From NCBI GenBank assembly GCA_905178155.1, contig CAJINV010000003.1, positions 2,893,715-2,957,714 on the forward strand: DNA of 64,000 nt. Reading direction: 5' to 3'. Position numbers and translations under genes: made by a program. Source of the stretch: Amoebophrya sp. A120. Lineage: Eukaryota > Protista > Dinoflagellata. Positions within the stretch are counted from its first letter, which is position 1. Each line of letters opens with the position of its first letter. This document shows positions 33,882-42,973 of the stretch, piece by piece. The notes beneath the pieces were generated by a model that was given only the letters and a program-made list of their open reading frames with translations, had not been told where the DNA came from and made no database searches.

Positions 33882-34546
33882 ACTTTGCCATAAAGTTGGA
33901 AACAACGACTACCATAACATCGATCAAAAATATCGGTTTCGGATGTTTTTGTTCTTTAGGATTTTGGTTGTGTCAGTCGCCAAACAAGCAAAAAAAAATC
34001 TTTTTCCCGTGTCGCGACTGAGTAAACTTTTGTACTCGAGGATTCTACAGCTCAGCACGGAGCAGAAGAGGTGTGCTCTGGTGCACAAGGCAGGCACAGA
34101 ATAAACCTTGCGCCATTTCTGCATCTGTTTCCATTTTCTTCGTGTTTATGTTCTCCATCTGCTTTTTCAACATTTTTATCCTACATGTTTGGCCTCATGT
34201 CTGTACACGGTATTACCCGGTTGCAACATATTCTAGAAGCAGTTCCCATCGAGTATGGAAGTATTTTTCTCGACGGCCAGTGGAGTTCCATCTGTGTATC
34301 TGTATGCATGCTTCCATATTCTTGTTCCAAAAGCTAAAATTGTTCGTACAAGTTGTGTATTGCTGGTCAATTTACGTTGAGTACAAAAGCCGTACCACAA
34401 GTATGAAGTGCAGGAGAAATAAGCATCAACACCAACACCTGGCCCTGGATTAGAAGAAATCTTAATCTATGTTCCTGGTCGACATGCTGTGAAAATCATT
34501 TTACATCAAGCTAGACCGGCTCGCGCCCGCAATCGAATCGGTTTTG

Positions 34547-35647
34547 TCATTTTTTTCGCGCCTCCACAATTTGGTCCATGCTTCGCAGGAAGCGAGCGAA
34601 AAAGGTGGGGAGGAGATACTCTGCCGAAACGAACTTTGCAACTGCCCGCTCACACCGCATATCAACAGCTTCGTTATCCTCGTATGCTCCATTTCCAAGC
34701 GACGCCGAGGCAGCGGTTGCAAAAATCTGGTTGGCGTTGACCAGGCGCGGCACTTACTTGGGTAAGGCCCGCAGCTTCCGTGAAACATTTAATCGCGCAG
34801 CACATTCTTTGTTTTAAGCCTTCAAATGCTTAATCTAGGAAATCGCGTTCATAAGGTTTAAGAGAGAGAGAGAGAGAACTGACATAATAAATTAGGCCAG
34901 ACAATATACGACGAACATCACACAGAAGAACGCTGGCCTTGCTCCCGTCCAACTGCTAGCGTGATGCCTCTCCGCCCAACTCGCAGCGCCTTCAGAAATG
35001 GCCCGGCTGACTACTCTCGGGTCGGATGCTGCGTGCGGATGCTGCTTGGTGTTATCTTGTTGCCCTAGCCGAAGTTCTCCTTTCAGGTAGTACAAGCCTG
35101 GTAGAGGACGACGAACTAGACCGAAGACTAGAACGCCCCCCAGCTACCGCGAGGTTTTTAGTAGTCAGTTTGCGTCAAGGCCGGCCGGAAGACACTGGGA
35201 TAGTTTACCTGTGGCCTTGTAGCCCGAGTCTGGTTCGAACCGTTCTACGCGCTGATGTCATCCCCCATGTCCGTGAAGAGTAAGGCGGCAAGTTAAGGGG
35301 GATTTGAGATGACGGGGAACTTAAAAAATAAAAGGCAATCGAAAGCAAACTAGTTCCCCGGCTCGACATGCGGCGGCGCTGCTCTTCCACGCAGCGCCCC
35401 GGCGAGCAGTTGACGGGGCACTCACTCACCGGACAGGCCGTCTCCCGCTCAGCGGCGTGGCGCGGCTGTTCTACCAGGAAAGCACTACAGATAGCTTTGC
35501 CGCTAATATTTCTATGCTTTTCTTTTTCCTTATGTTAATATTTAAGCTACTGCAGCGACGGACCTCGGCGGCGCATCCATCCGGTGAGCGAGTCAGGGCA
35601 GTTTGTGCAGGACGCATTTTATTTTTGTTTTTTGACCGACGTGTTTT

Positions 35648-35678
<31 letters not shown>

Positions 35679-38600
35679 TTCTTCGTCAACGTCCTTATGT
35701 GTGCACCCATGTGAGACTAGCGCTACCGGGGGGCTCTTCCTGTCCCCCCGGGTCCTAATGTGTTTTGATTTGGAAAGGGGTAGTATCCGTTCTCAAAAAC
35801 AAACGCAGGATCAAACGCAGGATCAAAGGTTTAGAATTTATGGAAAGCGTTTAAGCATTCGCGTTCATAAGGTTTAAGCATTAAAATGCCTAAACTAAGA
35901 AGTCGCAATTTAAGCATTCGAGTGCTTAAATTCACGGAAACGCAGATTGCAATTTGCTTTAGCAAATTTCAAATTTGCTCACACAGCTTCAAAGATAACC
36001 AGTCAATTAGCCATTCGAATGCTTAAAATGATTGTTTATTTTCAAGCAGTTAAGCACTCGAATGGCTAAACTGATTGCTTGTCTGTGCAGCTGCGTGAGC
36101 AAATTTGAATTTGCCCAGAGCAAATTTCAAATTTGCTCACGCAGATTGCAGTCTGCGTTTCCGTGAATTTAAGCACTCGAATGCCTAAACGCTATATCTA
36201 CCGCGACCGAGCGCGAGTGTTGTTGGTGTTGCTCGAGAGACAAAGAGCTTTCGCACCATGGGAAACAAAAGCTCCGCCGGTGCAAGAGCACAGAGCCAAA
36301 GCGTCCCGCGGCGCTTTTGTTAAGTGCCCACCCCGCGCAAAACCGCCGTGGGCGTCGTGATCCCTCCAGATCGCGACGCCTGGGGCAATTTGCCCCATTG
36401 GGCCCCCTGCGGGCTTCGGTGCACAAGGTTGCAGCGCGGCGCGGGCGCCTGGCGCGCGAGGGCGAGAAGGCGAATTCAAGAGCAAGGCGTGGCGCGCACG
36501 CTTCTCGCTGGGCCAACTGACGCGCGGGTGGGGTGGAGGGGCGTGGCCGCCGGAGCGGCGCCGCGCGGGCGGCACTTTTGTGTATCGGGGGCGAGGAAGC
36601 AAAGGGCAACGAGAGCACGACAGACAGAGCCAGGGCGCCCCGGGGCGCTTTTGTATGTTAAGTGCCTGCGGGCCCGGCGCAAAACTGTCGCTAGCGTCGT
36701 GATTTCACCAGACCGCGACGCCATTGGCGATGTATGGCGCAGGCACATACGACGCCACTTGCCCCGCGCGCGAGCCCCTTGGGGCGAGTTGCGAATGGCG
36801 TCGCGATCTGCTGAGATCGCGACGCTAGCGACAGTTGTGCGCGGGGCCGGCAGGCACTTGGCAAAAGTGTATGTTAAGTGCCTGCGAGCCCGGCGTCGCG
36901 ATCTGCTGAGATCACGACGCTAGCGACAGTTTTACGCGGAGCTTGCAGGCACTTAACAAAAGCGCCCCGGAGCGTCTTGGCTCTGTCTGTGCTCTTTCCC
37001 TTTGCTTCGTCGCCCCCGATAAAGCATTCGAATGACTCAAAGCAGCATCACAAAGTTGGCAAATAACGGCTCGCAGGGTCAAAATAAGGAAGCAGCAGAT
37101 TGAAATTTGCGCGAGCAAATTGGAATTTGCTCTGCCATTTTTGAAATTTGCTCGGGCGGTTGCAAAAATTCTCTTCATTTAAGCATCCGAATGTCTAAAC
37201 GACTACTCTTTTTTCGGTGACTTTAAGCGTTCGAGTCGCTATTTCTAGACTTCTTGCAGAAGCTCCGGAGCAAATTTCAAAAACCTGCGAGCAAATTCAA
37301 ATTTGCTCGCGCAAATTTCAATCTGCTGTTTTCTTATTTTAAGCACTCGAACGCTTAAACTGAAAAATGTCCGAGTTCTTAAATTAAGCACTCGAATGCT
37401 TAAACGCTAAAATCTCAAAGCATTCGATTTCTCAAATTAAGCCTAAAGACGCTTAAACCTCTAAGCTCTGCTCTTCGATTAAAAGTTTCACGGAAGCTAC
37501 TTTGACGGACCACATATGCAAAAACCTGGTTGGCGTTGACCAGGCGCGGCGCGGCTGGAGACGGATATCGAACAAAAAAGTGTTAACGTTACGGTTTGGC
37601 ATTTTTGGCATTAAAAATTTTTTGTGGGTTCCCTGCCGGCATCACATGAATGCGTAAAGGGCCCCGCTCACTTTTTTCACTATTGTGGGACTCTGAGTGA
37701 CTAACTTTGTTTGAGTTAGCTGGTGCACAAGGCCTGACGGCGCCGAACTTCGCCCACCGGGGCCGCTCCATGGCGAACCTTCCGCGCCACTTGGGCTCCT
37801 GGACCCGGTCGCAGCGCCTCCGCACCAGGTCGGTGTCATCGGAGCCTGCTTTTCAAGTGTTTGGGGACGCTTCGTGGACGGCAGCTACTGCAAGCCACCT
37901 CATTGAGAGATGGTCTCGAGTTGCCACCATCCTCGCCCCCGCTATCGACACTGAGGATGGACCTGCTTTTGGCAGGCAAAATCGATCATAGCGTGCTGTC
38001 TAAAAAGTGTTAACGGTTTTTTCGGGTCATAGGGAATTCCGCCGAAAAAATCCATGATTTGCTATCAATTTGAGGCCAAATTTCGCAGTCACCCAGAAAA
38101 ACCGTTAACACTTTTCAGACAGCATGCTATGATCGACTTACCCTGTCCAAAATCCTGCAGGCCAAGAAGCGCGGGCTCTGGGGAGGATAAATCGACCATA
38201 GCGTGCTGTCTAAAAAGTGTTAACGGTCATTTTTTGGCATTTTCATACAAAAATGCCTGCTTTTGGCAGGCTGGGGCGATCATACCGCCCATTCTAAAAA
38301 GTGCTAACGGTTTTATGGGTGACTGCAAAACTTGGGCACTTTGGTGCCCTAAATTTGCCAACTTTCCTCATCCTCGAAGTCACAGCTTTTCTGCTTCATG
38401 GAGAGAACTTCGTGAGATGGCTCAAAAGCTGCAGCGCAATGACTAGAAACGCAGCGAGCCTATACTGTTCTAAGGTGGCGATATGGTAAAGAGTTGCGCG
38501 GACCTTTCGGGGGGTTGTCGCATAGGCTCATATGCCGACACATGGCGCACGCCTTGCATGACAGACTTCATGGCGAAAGGTCGCCAACATCACCGCCATA

Positions 38601-41215
38601 TCATGCCAAAACAGTCAGAGCCGCGGCGCCCGTGGTATTCCTCCGGAGGTTGCGCTAGACCCGGGCGCGGAGTGGAATGCTTTGTGTACTAGCTAGCTCA
38701 AACCGATGACGCTACAACAGAGTCCCGCGGATGCAAAAACCTGGTTGGCGTTGACCAGGCGCGGCGCGGCTGGAGACGGAGCAGGAATCTCCATCGTTGC
38801 TGCCACGACAACGTCCATAGCTCCCTCTGCCGGCGTTCGCGGTAGTTTCGTAGGGAGTCCTAGCATCCGCGCCGGCACTGAAAGCCACCGACGGGCGACG
38901 CCTCGGTCACTCCTTTTGATACAACTGGAGGGCTCGGATTCTTCACTCTTGGAAGGAGGTGCTGTTGCCGCGTGTTGACTCGCGAACGGACAAAGGAATG
39001 ACTCTGCGGAGGTGTCGGAAGCTTGATCTCGCTTGCTACCCCGGTTGCTCGGGCCGCTCATGCACCAGCCTGGGCATACGAAAAGACTGTCGACGGCATG
39101 GGAAAACAATGCAGCATACGCTCGCGCTTGGTATCAAATGCAAAAGTGTCTGGGTCTGGAAGTATGGAGACTTGTCATGCATATTTCTCATGACCCGCGA
39201 TGCCTGTGATGCTTGACCTAGCATCGCAGACTTTTAGAGGGCTTCCTGATGCACCTTCCGCATGAGAAATGCCCTGTCCGTGTAGCAAAAACTGGGCCGC
39301 TCTTGCTGGTCATGCAATACAAATTTTTTTAGAGTCCAAAAACAGCATGACAAGTTGCAATCTTCCAGACCCAGACATTTTTGCAGTTGATACTTGGAGT
39401 GCGTTAACCAGTTTCGAATCCATGTACGACTTCGAGGAAACCGCCGACGCCTGTTTGGGATTGTCTCTGCTTTGTGGAGTAGTAGATGTAGTGCAACTAC
39501 AGCTGCATATATATGTATCATGCAGTCAATGCACTCATGCAATATCTTTCCAGATAAGTGATGCACTGTAAGCACCACGTTAGACCGACGGCGCTGCTGC
39601 CTTCCAGAGAATTTTCTTTGCACACGGGCAGGCAAAAATGTAGTTCTGTTAGAACTCAAAACTTCACAATTACCTGTTCGTCGTCGCGAAAAAACGCCAT
39701 TTCTTCCGCCCTTCCCGTAATTTGCGTGCTCGTCTCCCCACCTTCTCTATCGGCAAGGCCCAGCCGCCGTGAAAGGTTGCTCGGCAAATCTCCGAACTGC
39801 AGCAAACGCGAGGTGACGAAGACGACGCGCGGTCTCACCTGGCTGCTCTCGGCCGCGGCTTGATCCTCCTCGTCCGGTTGCGCAGGAGGTTCGAACGCGG
39901 GCGCCACGGAAAAGTGGCTCGCTTTCAAGGAACTACCAAACACCGAGTAGCTGTGCCCGTCTTCGCCCTTCGAAAGCTTATTGATCAAGTGGTGGTGGCC
40001 CAGGCAGTTGACTGCAAAAGGGGTTTCCCCAGGACTCCATGCGGCGGCGTTACAGATGAGCGCGTGGAAGCGCTCTTGCACCTCTTCCTGCAAAAGCCTT
40101 ACGTTTTCTACATCCAGGTCGGTCGTCCCATCAGGGAGTAGGCTATGGTCCCCGCGAGATGTGGAGGCCTGTAAATTGAACAGATTTCTTGAAGACCACG
40201 CAAAAAACCGTTTATACCAACGACTACGAGGGGAGAAGTACTTCAGGTTAAATAAGCGAAAATTTTCTATCTTATTCGGTGTTCCAGCAGGGCTCAAATA
40301 AAGCAATGGAGTCCAACTACATACCTCGTCGTCCCTGCCGATGTCAAAATTGGTCTGCGCCCACACCTGCTTTTCCGCGTTCACGTAGTCGACCATGGCC
40401 TTCTTTGTTTCCTTGCCAAAGCGCTTCACGGAGCGGAAATCAGCCAGGTCTAGCGGCACGACAATGATCCTTCGCGCTATTCGCTCCACCAGGGAACGCC
40501 GCACGTCGGCTTCAAGGTCCCGCGCAACCTCAATCCGCTTCTCCACGTCGCCGCGAATAATTTGCAGCTCCAGGTCGGAAGGGGATATATTCCGCCCTAC
40601 TGCTTTGTTTCTGGTTTTCGAAAGCGCAAATTTCAGCTCCTCTTCCAGAAGGGCACGCATCAGGTTTCCACGACCGTAGTCGCCTCCCCATCCGGAACCG
40701 AGTAAGACGGAACGTACTACAAAATCCAACACAGGTATGGATGCGCGCTCGCGCTGCTGCATCTGCTGGTAGTCATTGTCGTGAGTGAAACAGTTCGTTT
40801 CAGCCCGTCGCTCTCCTGCTTCGCTAGTACTTCTTCCATACCTATCGAAGCACACATCCGAGGCCACCTGGCGCGCCAAACGCAGTTTTAATGCCGACGA
40901 AAAAGCGAGTCTTCGCGCTGCGTCACATGCGTTGCCCACGGGAACAAAGCTCGAAGACGAATTCGGCGGAGGACCACGGACTCCAACCACGACAATTGCT
41001 CCTTCCCGTAGCAGTCCCCGCGCGGTTTCGTAGCCGATGCCACGGTTGCCTCCAGTGACAATGCAGAACCGGTTTCGAACCGAAACGCGAGGCAACGAAG
41101 AAGCTTCGTGCTCTGGCCGCGGCTTCAAGGCGGCAAGAGCACCTACCGCTGCTTCAATCAATCCCGACGCTCCATGTTGCCCAAAAAATCCTGTATGTGA
41201 AAACGGAAAACCCAT
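34547..41215 (-). CDS. Short-chain dehydrogenase/reductase (RDH/WWOX-like), 4 exons
   Basis: Exons 39674-41215 (TGGNRGIG, LDLADFRSV, LICNAA, RVVFVTS), 39398-39450 (YMDSK catalytic motif), 38741-39131 (VCPGW, RTPAEGA) and 34547-34726 (GNGAYEDNE…ARFLRSMDQIV). Introns: 39451-39673 GT-AG, 39132-39397 non-canonical, 34727-38740 GT-AG. Confidence 0.75.
34718..34751. repeat. Copy C of triplicated SDR coding segment
   Basis: TGCAAAAATCTGGTTGGCGTTGACCAGGCGCGGC, 33/34 identical to copies A and B. Confidence 0.95.
34861..34877. repeat. (AG)n microsatellite
   Basis: agagagagagagagaga. Confidence 0.9.
35651..35678. repeat. (GT)n microsatellite
   Basis: Perfect GT run. Confidence 0.95.
35850..37460. mobile_element. 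Foldback-like, palindrome-built non-coding element
   Basis: Three long inverted-repeat units (35909-36189, 36583-37021, 37081-37340), about 13 copies of TTTAAGCA-N6-TGCTTAAA and several GAGCAAATTT(C/G)AAATTTGCTC palindromes. No transposase ORF seen. Confidence 0.55.
37516..37565. repeat. Copy B of triplicated SDR coding segment
   Basis: 50/50 identical to 38731-38780. Confidence 0.95.
37967..38340. repeat. Direct/inverted repeat cluster of ~37-bp unit ATCGATCATAGCGTGCTGTCTAAAAAGTGTTAACGGT
   Basis: Forward copies at 37981 and 38191, a degenerate copy at ~38277, and an inverted copy at 38101-38136. Confidence 0.85.
38731..38780. repeat. Copy A of triplicated SDR coding segment (exon 3 end)
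   Basis: ATGCAAAAACCTGGTTGGCGTTGACCAGGCGCGGCGCGGCTGGAGACGGA. Confidence 0.95.
39132..39392. mobile_element. Introner-like inverted-repeat element (non-canonical intron) in SDR gene
   Basis: 31-bp TIRs, 29/31 match (TATCAAATGCAAAAGTGTCTGGGTCTGGAAG), flanked by 5-bp direct repeat CTTGG. Removing the element plus one repeat restores VNALQ|ARAY. Confidence 0.85.
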
Positions 41216-41680: not shown

Positions 41681-42973
41681 TCAAAGAAAGACTTGAAACA
41701 AAAGCATCATGGCGCACGCGAAGAGCACGGACAGCCACCAATTGCAGGTTGGCAAGGGCATTTTTGCGTCAGAAGATGCTGCCGCGGGGGAGGGTGAAGG
41801 CGTGGGCGACGGCGATGGGGCAGGAGTCGGTGTCGGACTGGGCGACGACACGACTGCCGTCAGTAAAGCGGGGTGCAAATAGGTTGTACTGACGACGGAG
41901 GTTGTTCTGCCGCTGACCTGCCCGGCATAGTCAGCACCCCAGCAATTCGGCACCTTATCCGCTTGCAGGGCACAGAAATGCGCGTACACTCCTGCACTGC
42001 CGCTCGCAAGCTGGCTCCACGACACGCCGTCGGGGTACTGAGCCATGTCCACGCTGCCACCGCCCCCCACGGAGTAGGAGTAGCTCTTCCCCCAGGCGTG
42101 GAGTGTCCCGTCGGCCTTTAACGCGTACACAGCAAAATTCATAGTGGACACCTGAGTGTAGACCTGGCCCGCGACCACAGAGCCCATGCTCAGAGACCCG
42201 ATGCCGCTCGCAGGCTTGGAGTTCGTCAGCCCATTCCCAATTTCCTGCGTGCCGCCGTAGACGCCCAGCTGCCCGCTCGCGCCGAGTACTGCTACGAAAT
42301 CAACTCCGCCGGAGACCTGCTGCACCGGGAAGTTTAAATTTGCGAGTTGTGTCGCGGTCGGCGTGTAGGAGCCGCGACTGTCCCCGAAGCACGTCAGACC
42401 GGCCACGCCCGATTGGAACGCGCAGCACCAGTGCCCCCCGCGTTTGCCGGCGCAGCTGAGGCCAGTAAACGTCGTGGCGGTCGCTGGCACATTTGCGAGT
42501 GCGAAGTTCACTGCAGTCGTGCTGGAACCCGTGGCGGCCGGCTGGCAGCTTATGGACGTCGCGCTTCCGCAATACACCGTATTGGGTCCCCAGGCCGTGA
42601 TCGTTCCGTCCGTGCGAATGAGTGCGCCGCCCCAAAAGCTTAGATCGGCATCCTTTACCTCAACACCAATCAGGCTCGCGGCATCCGTGTGGTCGGGTCC
42701 GTACCCGTTTGAGCCAACGTAGAAACTCACGCGCATGTTGGCATCCACGCCCATAACGGCTTTCCCGCCACACGTCAAGGCCTTTGCGGTGGTGCAGGGA
42801 AGCTTCGAATCCATGGAGTTCCCGCCCCAACAAGACGGCTTTCCGGTACTTTCGATGATTGCGCAGCAGAAATTGTCCCCACAACAGAGCGGGGAAAGCG
42901 CTCCGCTGACGCCGTGGTCATAGATGATAAGTGTGATGACGCAAGCCAGAAAAGCGATGGGAAATCGCCACAT
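41681..42973 (-). CDS. Secreted/GPI-like RCC1/BLIP-II beta-propeller surface protein
   Basis: Signal peptide; repeats CCGDNFCCAI..SCWG, GGVDFVAVL..GVYG, AVYALKADGTLHAWG and HFCAL..NCWG; an (SP/TP)n stalk; a hydrophobic C-terminus. Intronless. Confidence 0.8.
   Translation of the reverse strand: MWRFPIAFLACVITLIIYDHGVSGALSPLCCGDNFCCAIIESTGKPSCWGGNSMDSKLPCTTAKALTCGGKAVMGVDANMRVSFYVGSNGYGPDHTDAASLIGVEVKDADLSFWGGALIRTDGTITAWGPNTVYCGSATSISCQPAATGSSTTAVNFALANVPATATTFTGLSCAGKRGGHWCCAFQSGVAGLTCFGDSRGSYTPTATQLANLNFPVQQVSGGVDFVAVLGASGQLGVYGGTQEIGNGLTNSKPASGIGSLSMGSVVAGQVYTQVSTMNFAVYALKADGTLHAWGKSYSYSVGGGGSVDMAQYPDGVSWSQLASGSAGVYAHFCALQADKVPNCWGADYAGQVSGRTTSVVSTTYLHPALLTAVVSSPSPTPTPAPSPSPTPSPSPAAASSDAKMPLPTCNWWLSVLFACAMMLLFQVFL

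Follow-up and report, generated by a model that had tools for sequence, protein, structure and literature searches.

Nested mobile elements in an SDR-like gene of Amoebophrya sp. A120: probable excision at element-set borders with retention of duplicated codons

How does a 4-kb insert leave the message of a gene when it is bracketed by three copies of the gene's own exon segment, and what becomes of these copies? This question is raised by a locus of Amoebophrya sp. A120 (genome 115.5 Mb), which lies on the minus strand of a 64,000-nt stretch of contig CAJINV010000003.1 (the window, to which all coordinates without a contig label refer). The host gene encodes a protein resembling short-chain dehydrogenases/reductases (SDRs), and the insert consists of nested mobile DNA: two elements with terminal inverted repeats (TIRs), E1 and E2, and a retroposon, E3, inside E2. 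A reading of the locus from its sequence only had proposed a canonical GT-AG intron of 4,014 nt, running from CAG/GT in the first copy of the exon segment (copy A; the slash marks the splice point) to CAG/AT in the last (copy C) and removed in one step or recursively through the middle copy (copy B), which would leave a single copy in the mRNA. Here we describe a different product. The insert is removed, but probably at non-canonical borders set by the element, and part of the duplication stays in the message as extra codons.

Three exon copies and the spliced message

The RNA support is a single assembled Logan contig from run X3, the RNA label of which is a guess. This contig of 2,359 nt lies on positions 39673-40170, 38733-39126 and 34400-34748, and it is spliced at all four introns of the stretch. 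Its joints are 39449/39673 with GT..AG ends, 39126/39393 with five ambiguous letters, and 34748/38733 with one ambiguous letter; the last joint has a depth of 22 and 255 letters on its shorter side. The observed junction (38733 to 34748) reads ...GTTTTTGC-GCGCCTGG, and the intron removed (Table 1) ends in AT..CC, or in CA..GC after a shift of 1 nt. In the mRNA, offsets 1-48 of copy A are followed by offsets 19-49 of copy C, in frame (...PSPAAPRLVNANQVF-A-RLVNANQIFATAAS...). When the exons were joined and translated locally, the frame across the joint was open and read ...NANQVFARLVNANQIFATAAS... Thirty nucleotides of the duplication are kept in the message and give 10 extra in-frame codons (...NANQVF-ARLVNANQIF...).

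Removal of the 4-kb insert, which had been foreseen, is supported by this joint, by the annotated protein P0001 (693 aa, Amoebophrya sp. A120) and by the C-terminus of its ortholog P0002 (519 aa, product of an MMETSP transcript); both proteins were found in a search with the large upstream open reading frame (ORF). The route that had been foreseen was not supported. The predicted junction ...AACCAG-ATTTTTGC (AACCAG-ATTTTT) is not in the X3 contig, and the 4,014-nt intron is not used in the X3 product; the joint is 38733/34748, not 38741/34726. The GT-AG sites do exist as described, a message with one copy would keep the frame and agree with the single copy of the ortholog, and about 40% of A120 introns are canonical according to PMC7789003. 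However, the only RNA on the locus keeps two copies, neither 38741/34726 nor 37526/34726 is among the joints listed at the 5% threshold, and the annotation also retains extra copies. As the main product, the canonical intron is already contradicted, and we find it scarcely credible. Of the recursive pathway (1,215 + 2,799 nt), the 2,799-nt second step is not used in the X3 product, as the final product differs; the 1,215-nt half from copy A to copy B stands only in that it is compatible with the mRNA, the sequence of which is the same whichever register of the 1,215-nt period is removed.

Two introns, 38734-37562 (1,173 nt, GC..CG) and 37517-34749 (2,769 nt, AT..CC), account exactly for the tail of P0001. 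In this model copy B is a 44-nt exon and the segment is kept three times, whereas the X3 contig keeps it twice. The two introns could represent the main product, with copy B as a true micro-exon. Besides the exact match of the coordinates, the first intron has its 3' border 4 nt beyond the true terminus of E1, the same +4 as at another E1 locus (L013, below), which suggests transcript evidence and not chance. On the other hand, the X3 contig passes straight from copy A to copy C, unbroken and with no extra 42 nt, and a three-copy form of comparable abundance would create a loop in the assembly graph. Furthermore, the annotation pipeline (Gmove) retains the longest ORF per locus, as stated in PMC7789003, and this choice favours the three-copy path. 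It is quite unlikely that the three-copy form is the main product. Because the pipeline keeps the longest ORF and because abundant three-copy RNA would have broken the X3 contig, we regard the two-copy mRNA as the dominant form; the three-copy form may be a minor isoform.

Another explanation is that copy B and E1 result from misassembly, or exist in only a fraction of the culture, so that the RNA came from a template with E2 alone. Short-read contigs are unable to span the identical copies A and B, the DNA contigs of run X5 break in the repeats, and the observed mRNA is what an allele lacking E1 would give. Yet the locus lies on a 12-Mb contig of a 401-contig assembly, the annotated intron 38734-37562 needs transcripts with both A and B, and the combination of a truncated copy and a long duplication recurs at many other loci. 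We consider an artefact or polymorphism very unlikely. Odd joints listed for the X5 contigs (e.g., 37516/39131, 25 letters on the shorter side) stem from other repeat copies.

The three copies themselves, with the identities first given (50/50 and 33/34), were confirmed by a repeat search, which places A and B 1215 and B and C 2799 apart, and by a whole-genome count. The core 24-mer occurs exactly three times in the genome, always at this locus (reversed control, 0), and is therefore unique host exon sequence and not a member of a repeat family. For copy C the repeat search matched 34718-34751 (33/34), and direct reading on the minus strand gives 36 nt with two mismatches. The junction letters, CAG/GT in copies A and B and CAG/AT in copy C, were also found as claimed. 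The likeness of VFASAG and IFATAA, which follow copies A and C, was considered as a longer exon duplication or as microhomology; it was rejected because the bases after copy A (CCGCGGG...) are internal E1 sequence in every other E1 copy.

The alignment of P0002 with P0001 reaches the very end (...YL.PTFFARFLR..DQIVEARK.). The distal exon, predicted as a 59-codon frame after copy C and present in P0001, is therefore the genuine C-terminus of the gene. Read-through from copy A gives an ORF that ends early (...VFASAGLCCSVIGLS, then stop), as the sequence-only reading had said. The duplicated segment is present once in P0002, the C-terminus of which is the same as that of P0001; since the ortholog has the segment only once, a single copy is the ancestral state. 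The upstream exon translates to the ...EIPAPSPAAPRLVNANQVF part of P0001. In P0001 the TGxxxGxG motif, the catalytic Ser and the YxxxK motif of SDRs are read as TGGNRGIG, VFVTS and YMDSK, and all are conserved in P0002 where alignable. The Pfam adh_short match was below threshold (22.6-23.5 bits against a cut-off of 26.6) and confined to the N-terminal 27 residues. The host protein is best called a divergent SDR-like protein. A Pfam search of the small ORFs (the copy-A read-through and the C-terminal exon) gave no match. The upstream neighbour, at 41681-42973, is an intron-less ORF of 430 aa with a weak RCC1-like match, a signal-peptide-like start, a Pro/Ser/Thr-rich stretch and a hydrophobic tail.

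Table 1. Features of the locus, with positions in the window.
Feature	Position	Strand	Description
Neighbouring classical introner	39127..39392	-	266 nt; TATC...GATA ends, 32-nt inverted repeat, 5-nt direct repeat CCAAG
Upstream coding exon	38733..39126	-	Ends inside copy A, at offset 48 of the 50-mer; RNA contig X3 ungapped
Copy A	38731..38780	-	50-bp duplicated exon segment; CAG/GT at offsets 38-42
E1	37566..38730	-	1,165-bp copy of a 1,283-bp TAT..ATA TIR family; five other copies, 88-98% identity
Copy B	37516..37565	-	50/50 identical to A; absent from RNA contig; annotated as 44-nt micro-exon 37518-37561
E2	34754..37516	-	TIR introner-type element, termini TTATGTGG...CCAAGTAA; 1,747 bp of own sequence plus nested E3
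E3	34863..35858	-	996-bp retroposon resembling a short interspersed nuclear element (SINE), (CT)n tail, nested in E2
Copy C	34718..34753	-	Downstream copy of the E2 target duplication; 34 nt (33/34) or 36 nt (34/36)
RNA-supported intron (net removal)	34749..38732	-	3,984 nt (1,328 codons); X3 joint 34748/38733
Last coding exon	34547..34748	-	ARLVNANQIFATAAS...DQIVEARKK, then stop; RNA contig, P0001 tail, P0002 alignment

Excision borders and the removal of E1

The 3' border of the window intron is CCAAGTAA plus gtgcc, or plus gtgc in the other register, that is, 4-5 nt past the last base of E2, and its 5' border is the offset of the 50-mer at which E2 begins. These borders match the element-anchored, non-canonical excision of the element plus 5 nt in this organism. 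A classical introner adjoins the YMDSK catalytic motif of the same gene (Table 1): a 261-nt element plus CCAAG, the removal of which is confirmed by the RNA joint 39126/39393. Its family is extremely abundant, because DNA contig depth reaches about 180,000-370,000 there and about 42 in unique sequence.

Another annotated protein, P0003 (1,227 aa), holds two short tandem peptide repeats, each of which spans an introner flanked by a 30-39-bp duplication. At locus L013 (C5:1872037-1876203) a full-length copy of E1 lies within a 39-bp duplication, and P0003 keeps both copies of it. The protein reads ...LPIGHSDPVLPAV-LK-T-IGHSDPVLPAV-PGSG... across E1, and this is reproduced only if 1 nt upstream and 4 nt downstream are removed with the element (AT..GC). 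At locus L034 (C5:1867500-1872600) P0003 carries NSTTNLRPMA twice, across a 1,038-bp TATC..GATA element that is removed with 5 nt; several registers fit, 1+4 among them. In the window, the annotation likewise places the 3' border of the E1 intron at +4. In four cases the retained duplications have lengths of 30, 42, 45 and 30 nt and form in-frame repeats. We conclude that it is the element, not the duplicated exon, from which the excision is measured, which is why the long duplications stay in the message as in-frame repeats. By the same rule, DSSQKMSA-SQKMSATT is predicted as the product at locus L033 (C3:9036892-9038226), where a complete 1,288-bp TAT..ATA element of a third family (TATGGATCCAC...GTGGGTCCATA) sits inside a long minus-strand ORF with a perfect 23-bp duplication.

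Introner elements and non-canonical introns of A120 have been described with inverted repeats of 8-20 nt and direct repeats of 3-5 nt, among introns of 40-1000 nt that were analysed (Farhat et al. 2021; PMC7789003). As in those introners, the window intron combines non-canonical borders, RNA-supported removal and membership of a repeated family. An inverted repeat of at least 8-20 nt is found between the 5' end of E2 on the copy-B side and its 3' end, which are strongly complementary (duplex z = -6.9 against shuffles), and it is not found for the 5' end at copy A that is actually joined in the mRNA (z = +0.9 with the 3' end of E2). A direct repeat of 3-5 nt is found at the neighbouring introner 39127-39392 and not at the window joint, which has one ambiguous letter and flanking repeats of 34-36 and 50 nt.

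The copy-A border is the part of this intron that depends on E1. The window copy of E1 starts 116 nt inside the element; its whole 5' TIR is gone and its 3' terminus (...GTTCGATA) is intact. Full E1 copies reach 111-119 nt further upstream, and their family has the termini TATCGAAC...GTTCGATA and TIRs of about 60 nt. With the 5' TIR missing, a terminal hairpin would not be possible for E1. The E1 start pairs neither with the 3' end of E2 (z = +0.9) nor with that of E1 itself (z = -1.4), and for this reason the hairpin model explains E2 but not the copy-A border. Along with E1, exactly one 50-mer disappears. The mRNA seen here would result from a single step that starts at the duplicated junction in copy A, or from removal of E2 (37517-34749) plus any one 1,215-nt A-B period, and any of the 49 registers of this period gives the same mRNA. 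Only one register within the 50-mer is GT-AG, namely CAG/GT between offsets 40 and 41. The copy-A junction may be used directly, in one step, or E1 may leave as a separate 1,215-nt intron through the CAG/GT register. We give about half of the weight to two steps, about a third to one step and the small remainder to other routes. A GT-AG intron made by duplication thus survives as a candidate only for E1.

Nested insertions and the origin of the long duplications

In both inserts the element ends fall on the borders of the repeats. The earlier proposal of two successive insertions, each with a very long target duplication, agrees with our data: the duplications abut the ends of the elements, A and B are perfectly identical, and B and C differ at two positions. 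E2 has family copies at loci L002, L003 and L023-L028, and the window copy lacks the first T only. Its termini TTATGTGG...CCAAGTAA could be defined because the full-length copies L002 and L003 carry 5-bp target duplications (GTCGG and CATCT). The genome holds at least six copies of E1 and at least nine of E2. E3 is flanked by a 20-bp target duplication (34843-34862 and 35859-35878), and the E2 copy L002 has the empty site. Other E3 copies (loci L004-L010) have variable 5' ends and 14-15-bp duplications, and the RNA contig depth of E3 is 3-7 times that of the exons of the host gene. The 20-bp duplication was considered as another case of the long-duplication oddity and was rejected as an ordinary retroposon feature. 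The interior of E2 (35850-37460) contains nested palindromes of two short modules, TTAAGCACTCGAATGCTTAAAC-like and GCAAATTTCAAATTTGCTC-like, with 45 inverted-repeat pairs in 8 kb.

Three clues bear on the order of insertion: A and B are identical over 50/50, B and C over 34/36, and copy A ends in a T that matches the first retained base of E2 and not the neighbour of E1. Because the A-B pair is perfect, because B and C differ at 2 of 36 positions and because the terminal T of copy A belongs to E2, we infer from these comparisons that E2 came first and E1 later at the exon/E2 border, although the single T alone would have a one-in-four chance of matching.

Are such long duplications peculiar to this locus? 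The flanks of 15 E1 and E2 copies were aligned, with mismatched flank pairs as a control (mean score 9, 95th percentile 11). Direct repeats of 15-61 bp flank 12 of the 15 copies (scores 12.5-55); in two copies the repeat is 5 bp, and one copy gave no clear result. A single control pair reached a score of 52.5. The seven deep truncations all fall on one side of the element (E2 at 431, 766, 1021, 1074 and 1547; E1 at 117 and 237), and junctions often carry 4-25 nt of filler. A cut-and-paste TIR transposon would have a duplication of fixed length and complete termini; here 5 bp is found in two copies and 15-61 bp in 12, with truncations and filler. Fixed-length cut-and-paste does not explain these E1 and E2 copies. 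An origin of the truncated E2 copies from excised introns was considered; no constant 5-nt source tag was seen after their 3' ends. Variable duplications, polar 5' truncation and an available reverse transcriptase are all present, as in target-primed reverse transcription (TPRT). A genome-wide search found 106 RVT_1 matches, most of them stop-free within the match and contained in open frames that span several hundred to about 3,800 aa. The 3' tail of TPRT is not seen in E1 (...GTTCGATA) or E2 (...CCAAGTAA), which end with neither poly(A) nor a simple repeat, and E3 has its (CT)n tail. The long duplications are a family trait, and they would point to a second insertion route other than cut-and-paste. 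One candidate is TPRT in trans, for which the polarity speaks and against which the missing tail counts; the other is end-joining or integration by one end at staggered breaks.

Alternatively, the long duplications could be later local rearrangements around ordinary 5-bp insertions, such as failed excision with repair synthesis or small tandem duplications. The L034 element is directly flanked by the 5-bp ATAGT with the 30-bp repeat outside it, and full-length E2 copies have plain 5-bp duplications, as this explanation would have it. However, no 5-bp repeat flanks the elements in the window, at L013 or at L033, where the long repeat abuts the element; moreover, long repeats occur together with truncation on one side and with filler, a pattern that implicates the insertion event itself. 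Later rearrangement seems rather unlikely to us.

Returning to a duplication made at insertion, the history of the locus may have been as follows. E2 would have inserted first, in the last exon of the SDR-like gene, with a 34-36-bp duplication of the exon, and would itself have been hit by E3 at a later step. E1, a 5'-truncated piece of the second TIR family, would have followed E2, entering at the precise border between exon and E2 and giving a perfect 50-bp duplication. TPRT in trans, or end-joining at staggered breaks, may have produced both long duplications. In splicing, everything between 38732 and 34749 leaves the mRNA, with the 3' cut 4-5 nt beyond E2 and the 5' cut at the E2-start offset of the 50-mer; the 30 nt, or 10 codons, remain because the cuts are placed by reference to the element, not to the duplicated exon.

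We judge it quite probable that, as a whole, the insert arose by two insertions and is spliced out at non-canonical, element-set borders with duplicate codons retained. Several points weigh against this view. The RNA support is one contig from a run with a guessed label, though it is spliced at every intron, and assembled contigs hide minor isoforms. The raw-read RNA runs X7 and X8, which carry the same species label, gave two reads each, both on the high-copy introner, and did not cover the locus. The public annotation shows a different product, and because this product carries three copies, at least one other isoform may exist besides the two-copy form. The -1/+4 register rests on one unambiguous annotated case (L013) and on compatible ambiguous ones. 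Lastly, the absence of a poly(A) or simple-repeat tail on E1 and E2 is unusual for TPRT, and some copies with long duplications are full length (L013, L033 and E2 of the window).

The splice register of ordinary Amoebophrya introners cannot be known because of their 5-nt duplication, and copies in which the duplication is long or missing act as natural experiments that reveal it: the total removed is the element plus 5 nt, in one unambiguous case 1 nt upstream and 4 nt downstream, and the duplicated exon is ignored. This register bears on how sites are chosen by a spliceosome whose U1 snRNA (small nuclear RNA) was not detected, according to PMC7789003. The same paper reports that no transposase was found in A120; the long variable duplications and polar truncations are a lead on how introners spread in such a genome. 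Our wider proposal is tentative. Introners might have a second route of spread, element-measured excision (1 nt before, 4 nt after) might write in-frame peptide repeats into proteins, and the TIR-less E1 might survive only through its 50-bp copied junction, possibly as a duplication-made GT-AG intron. If excision is measured in this way, every such coding hit would write a short in-frame peptide repeat into a protein. The locus shows a simple path from transposon insertion to short tandem peptide repeats, and the public protein model, with three copies, disagrees with the two-copy RNA contig that we take as dominant.

Comparison with known systems

Insertions made by TPRT, such as long interspersed nuclear elements, SINEs and processed pseudogenes, resemble E1 and E2 in their variable duplications (here 15-61 bp), one-sided truncation, intact opposite end and filler, and the genome has many reverse transcriptase genes; E3 is a clear case of this type. 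Unlike TPRT insertions, E1 and E2 are bounded by TIRs and lack a poly(A) or simple-repeat tail, and some of their copies have fixed 5-bp duplications like DNA transposons. Recursive splicing at AG/GT ratchet sites occurs in long introns of Drosophila and vertebrates. Copy B likewise places AG/GT inside a long intron, but the product that a second step to the copy-C CAG would give is not seen, and if removal is stepwise, a non-canonical introner forms the second intron. The creation of introns through tandem duplication of an exon segment containing AGGT has reportedly been proposed by Rogers (1989) and Hellsten et al. (2011). In line with this, copies A and B each carry CAG/GT at a distance of 1,215 nt, and removal of the interval gives the observed mRNA. 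The difference is that the duplication here flanks an inserted element and is not a plain tandem repeat; the AG/GT pair is a candidate only, as any of 49 registers fits.

In Micromonas and Aureococcus, introners carry one splice site themselves and co-opt the other from a short duplication of fixed length, which results in GT-AG introns. Unlike these, the intron here has non-canonical borders, and the exon is not restored by means of the duplication. Huff et al. (2016) are said to have described introners as intron-generating transposons. The present case resembles the introners of Gozashti et al. (2022/2025; PMC9860276 and PMC12130899), in that an element enters an exon and is then spliced out. 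A120 introners of TIR, long terminal repeat (LTR), non-LTR and other, unclassified type are listed in PMC12130899; the passages found by term search in this paper and in PMC7789003 do not describe long variable duplications, duplications retained as peptide repeats, or the splice register. The closest relatives are the Amoebophrya introners of PMC7789003, which come from the same organism. Their direct repeats are 3-5 nt, whereas here the repeats are 34-50 nt, the intron is 3,984 nt long and contains three elements, one of its components lacks the TIR, and the duplication is partly retained as coding sequence. Both are multi-copy TIR elements in genes, with hairpin ends and non-GT-AG borders, that are excised as the element plus a few nucleotides.

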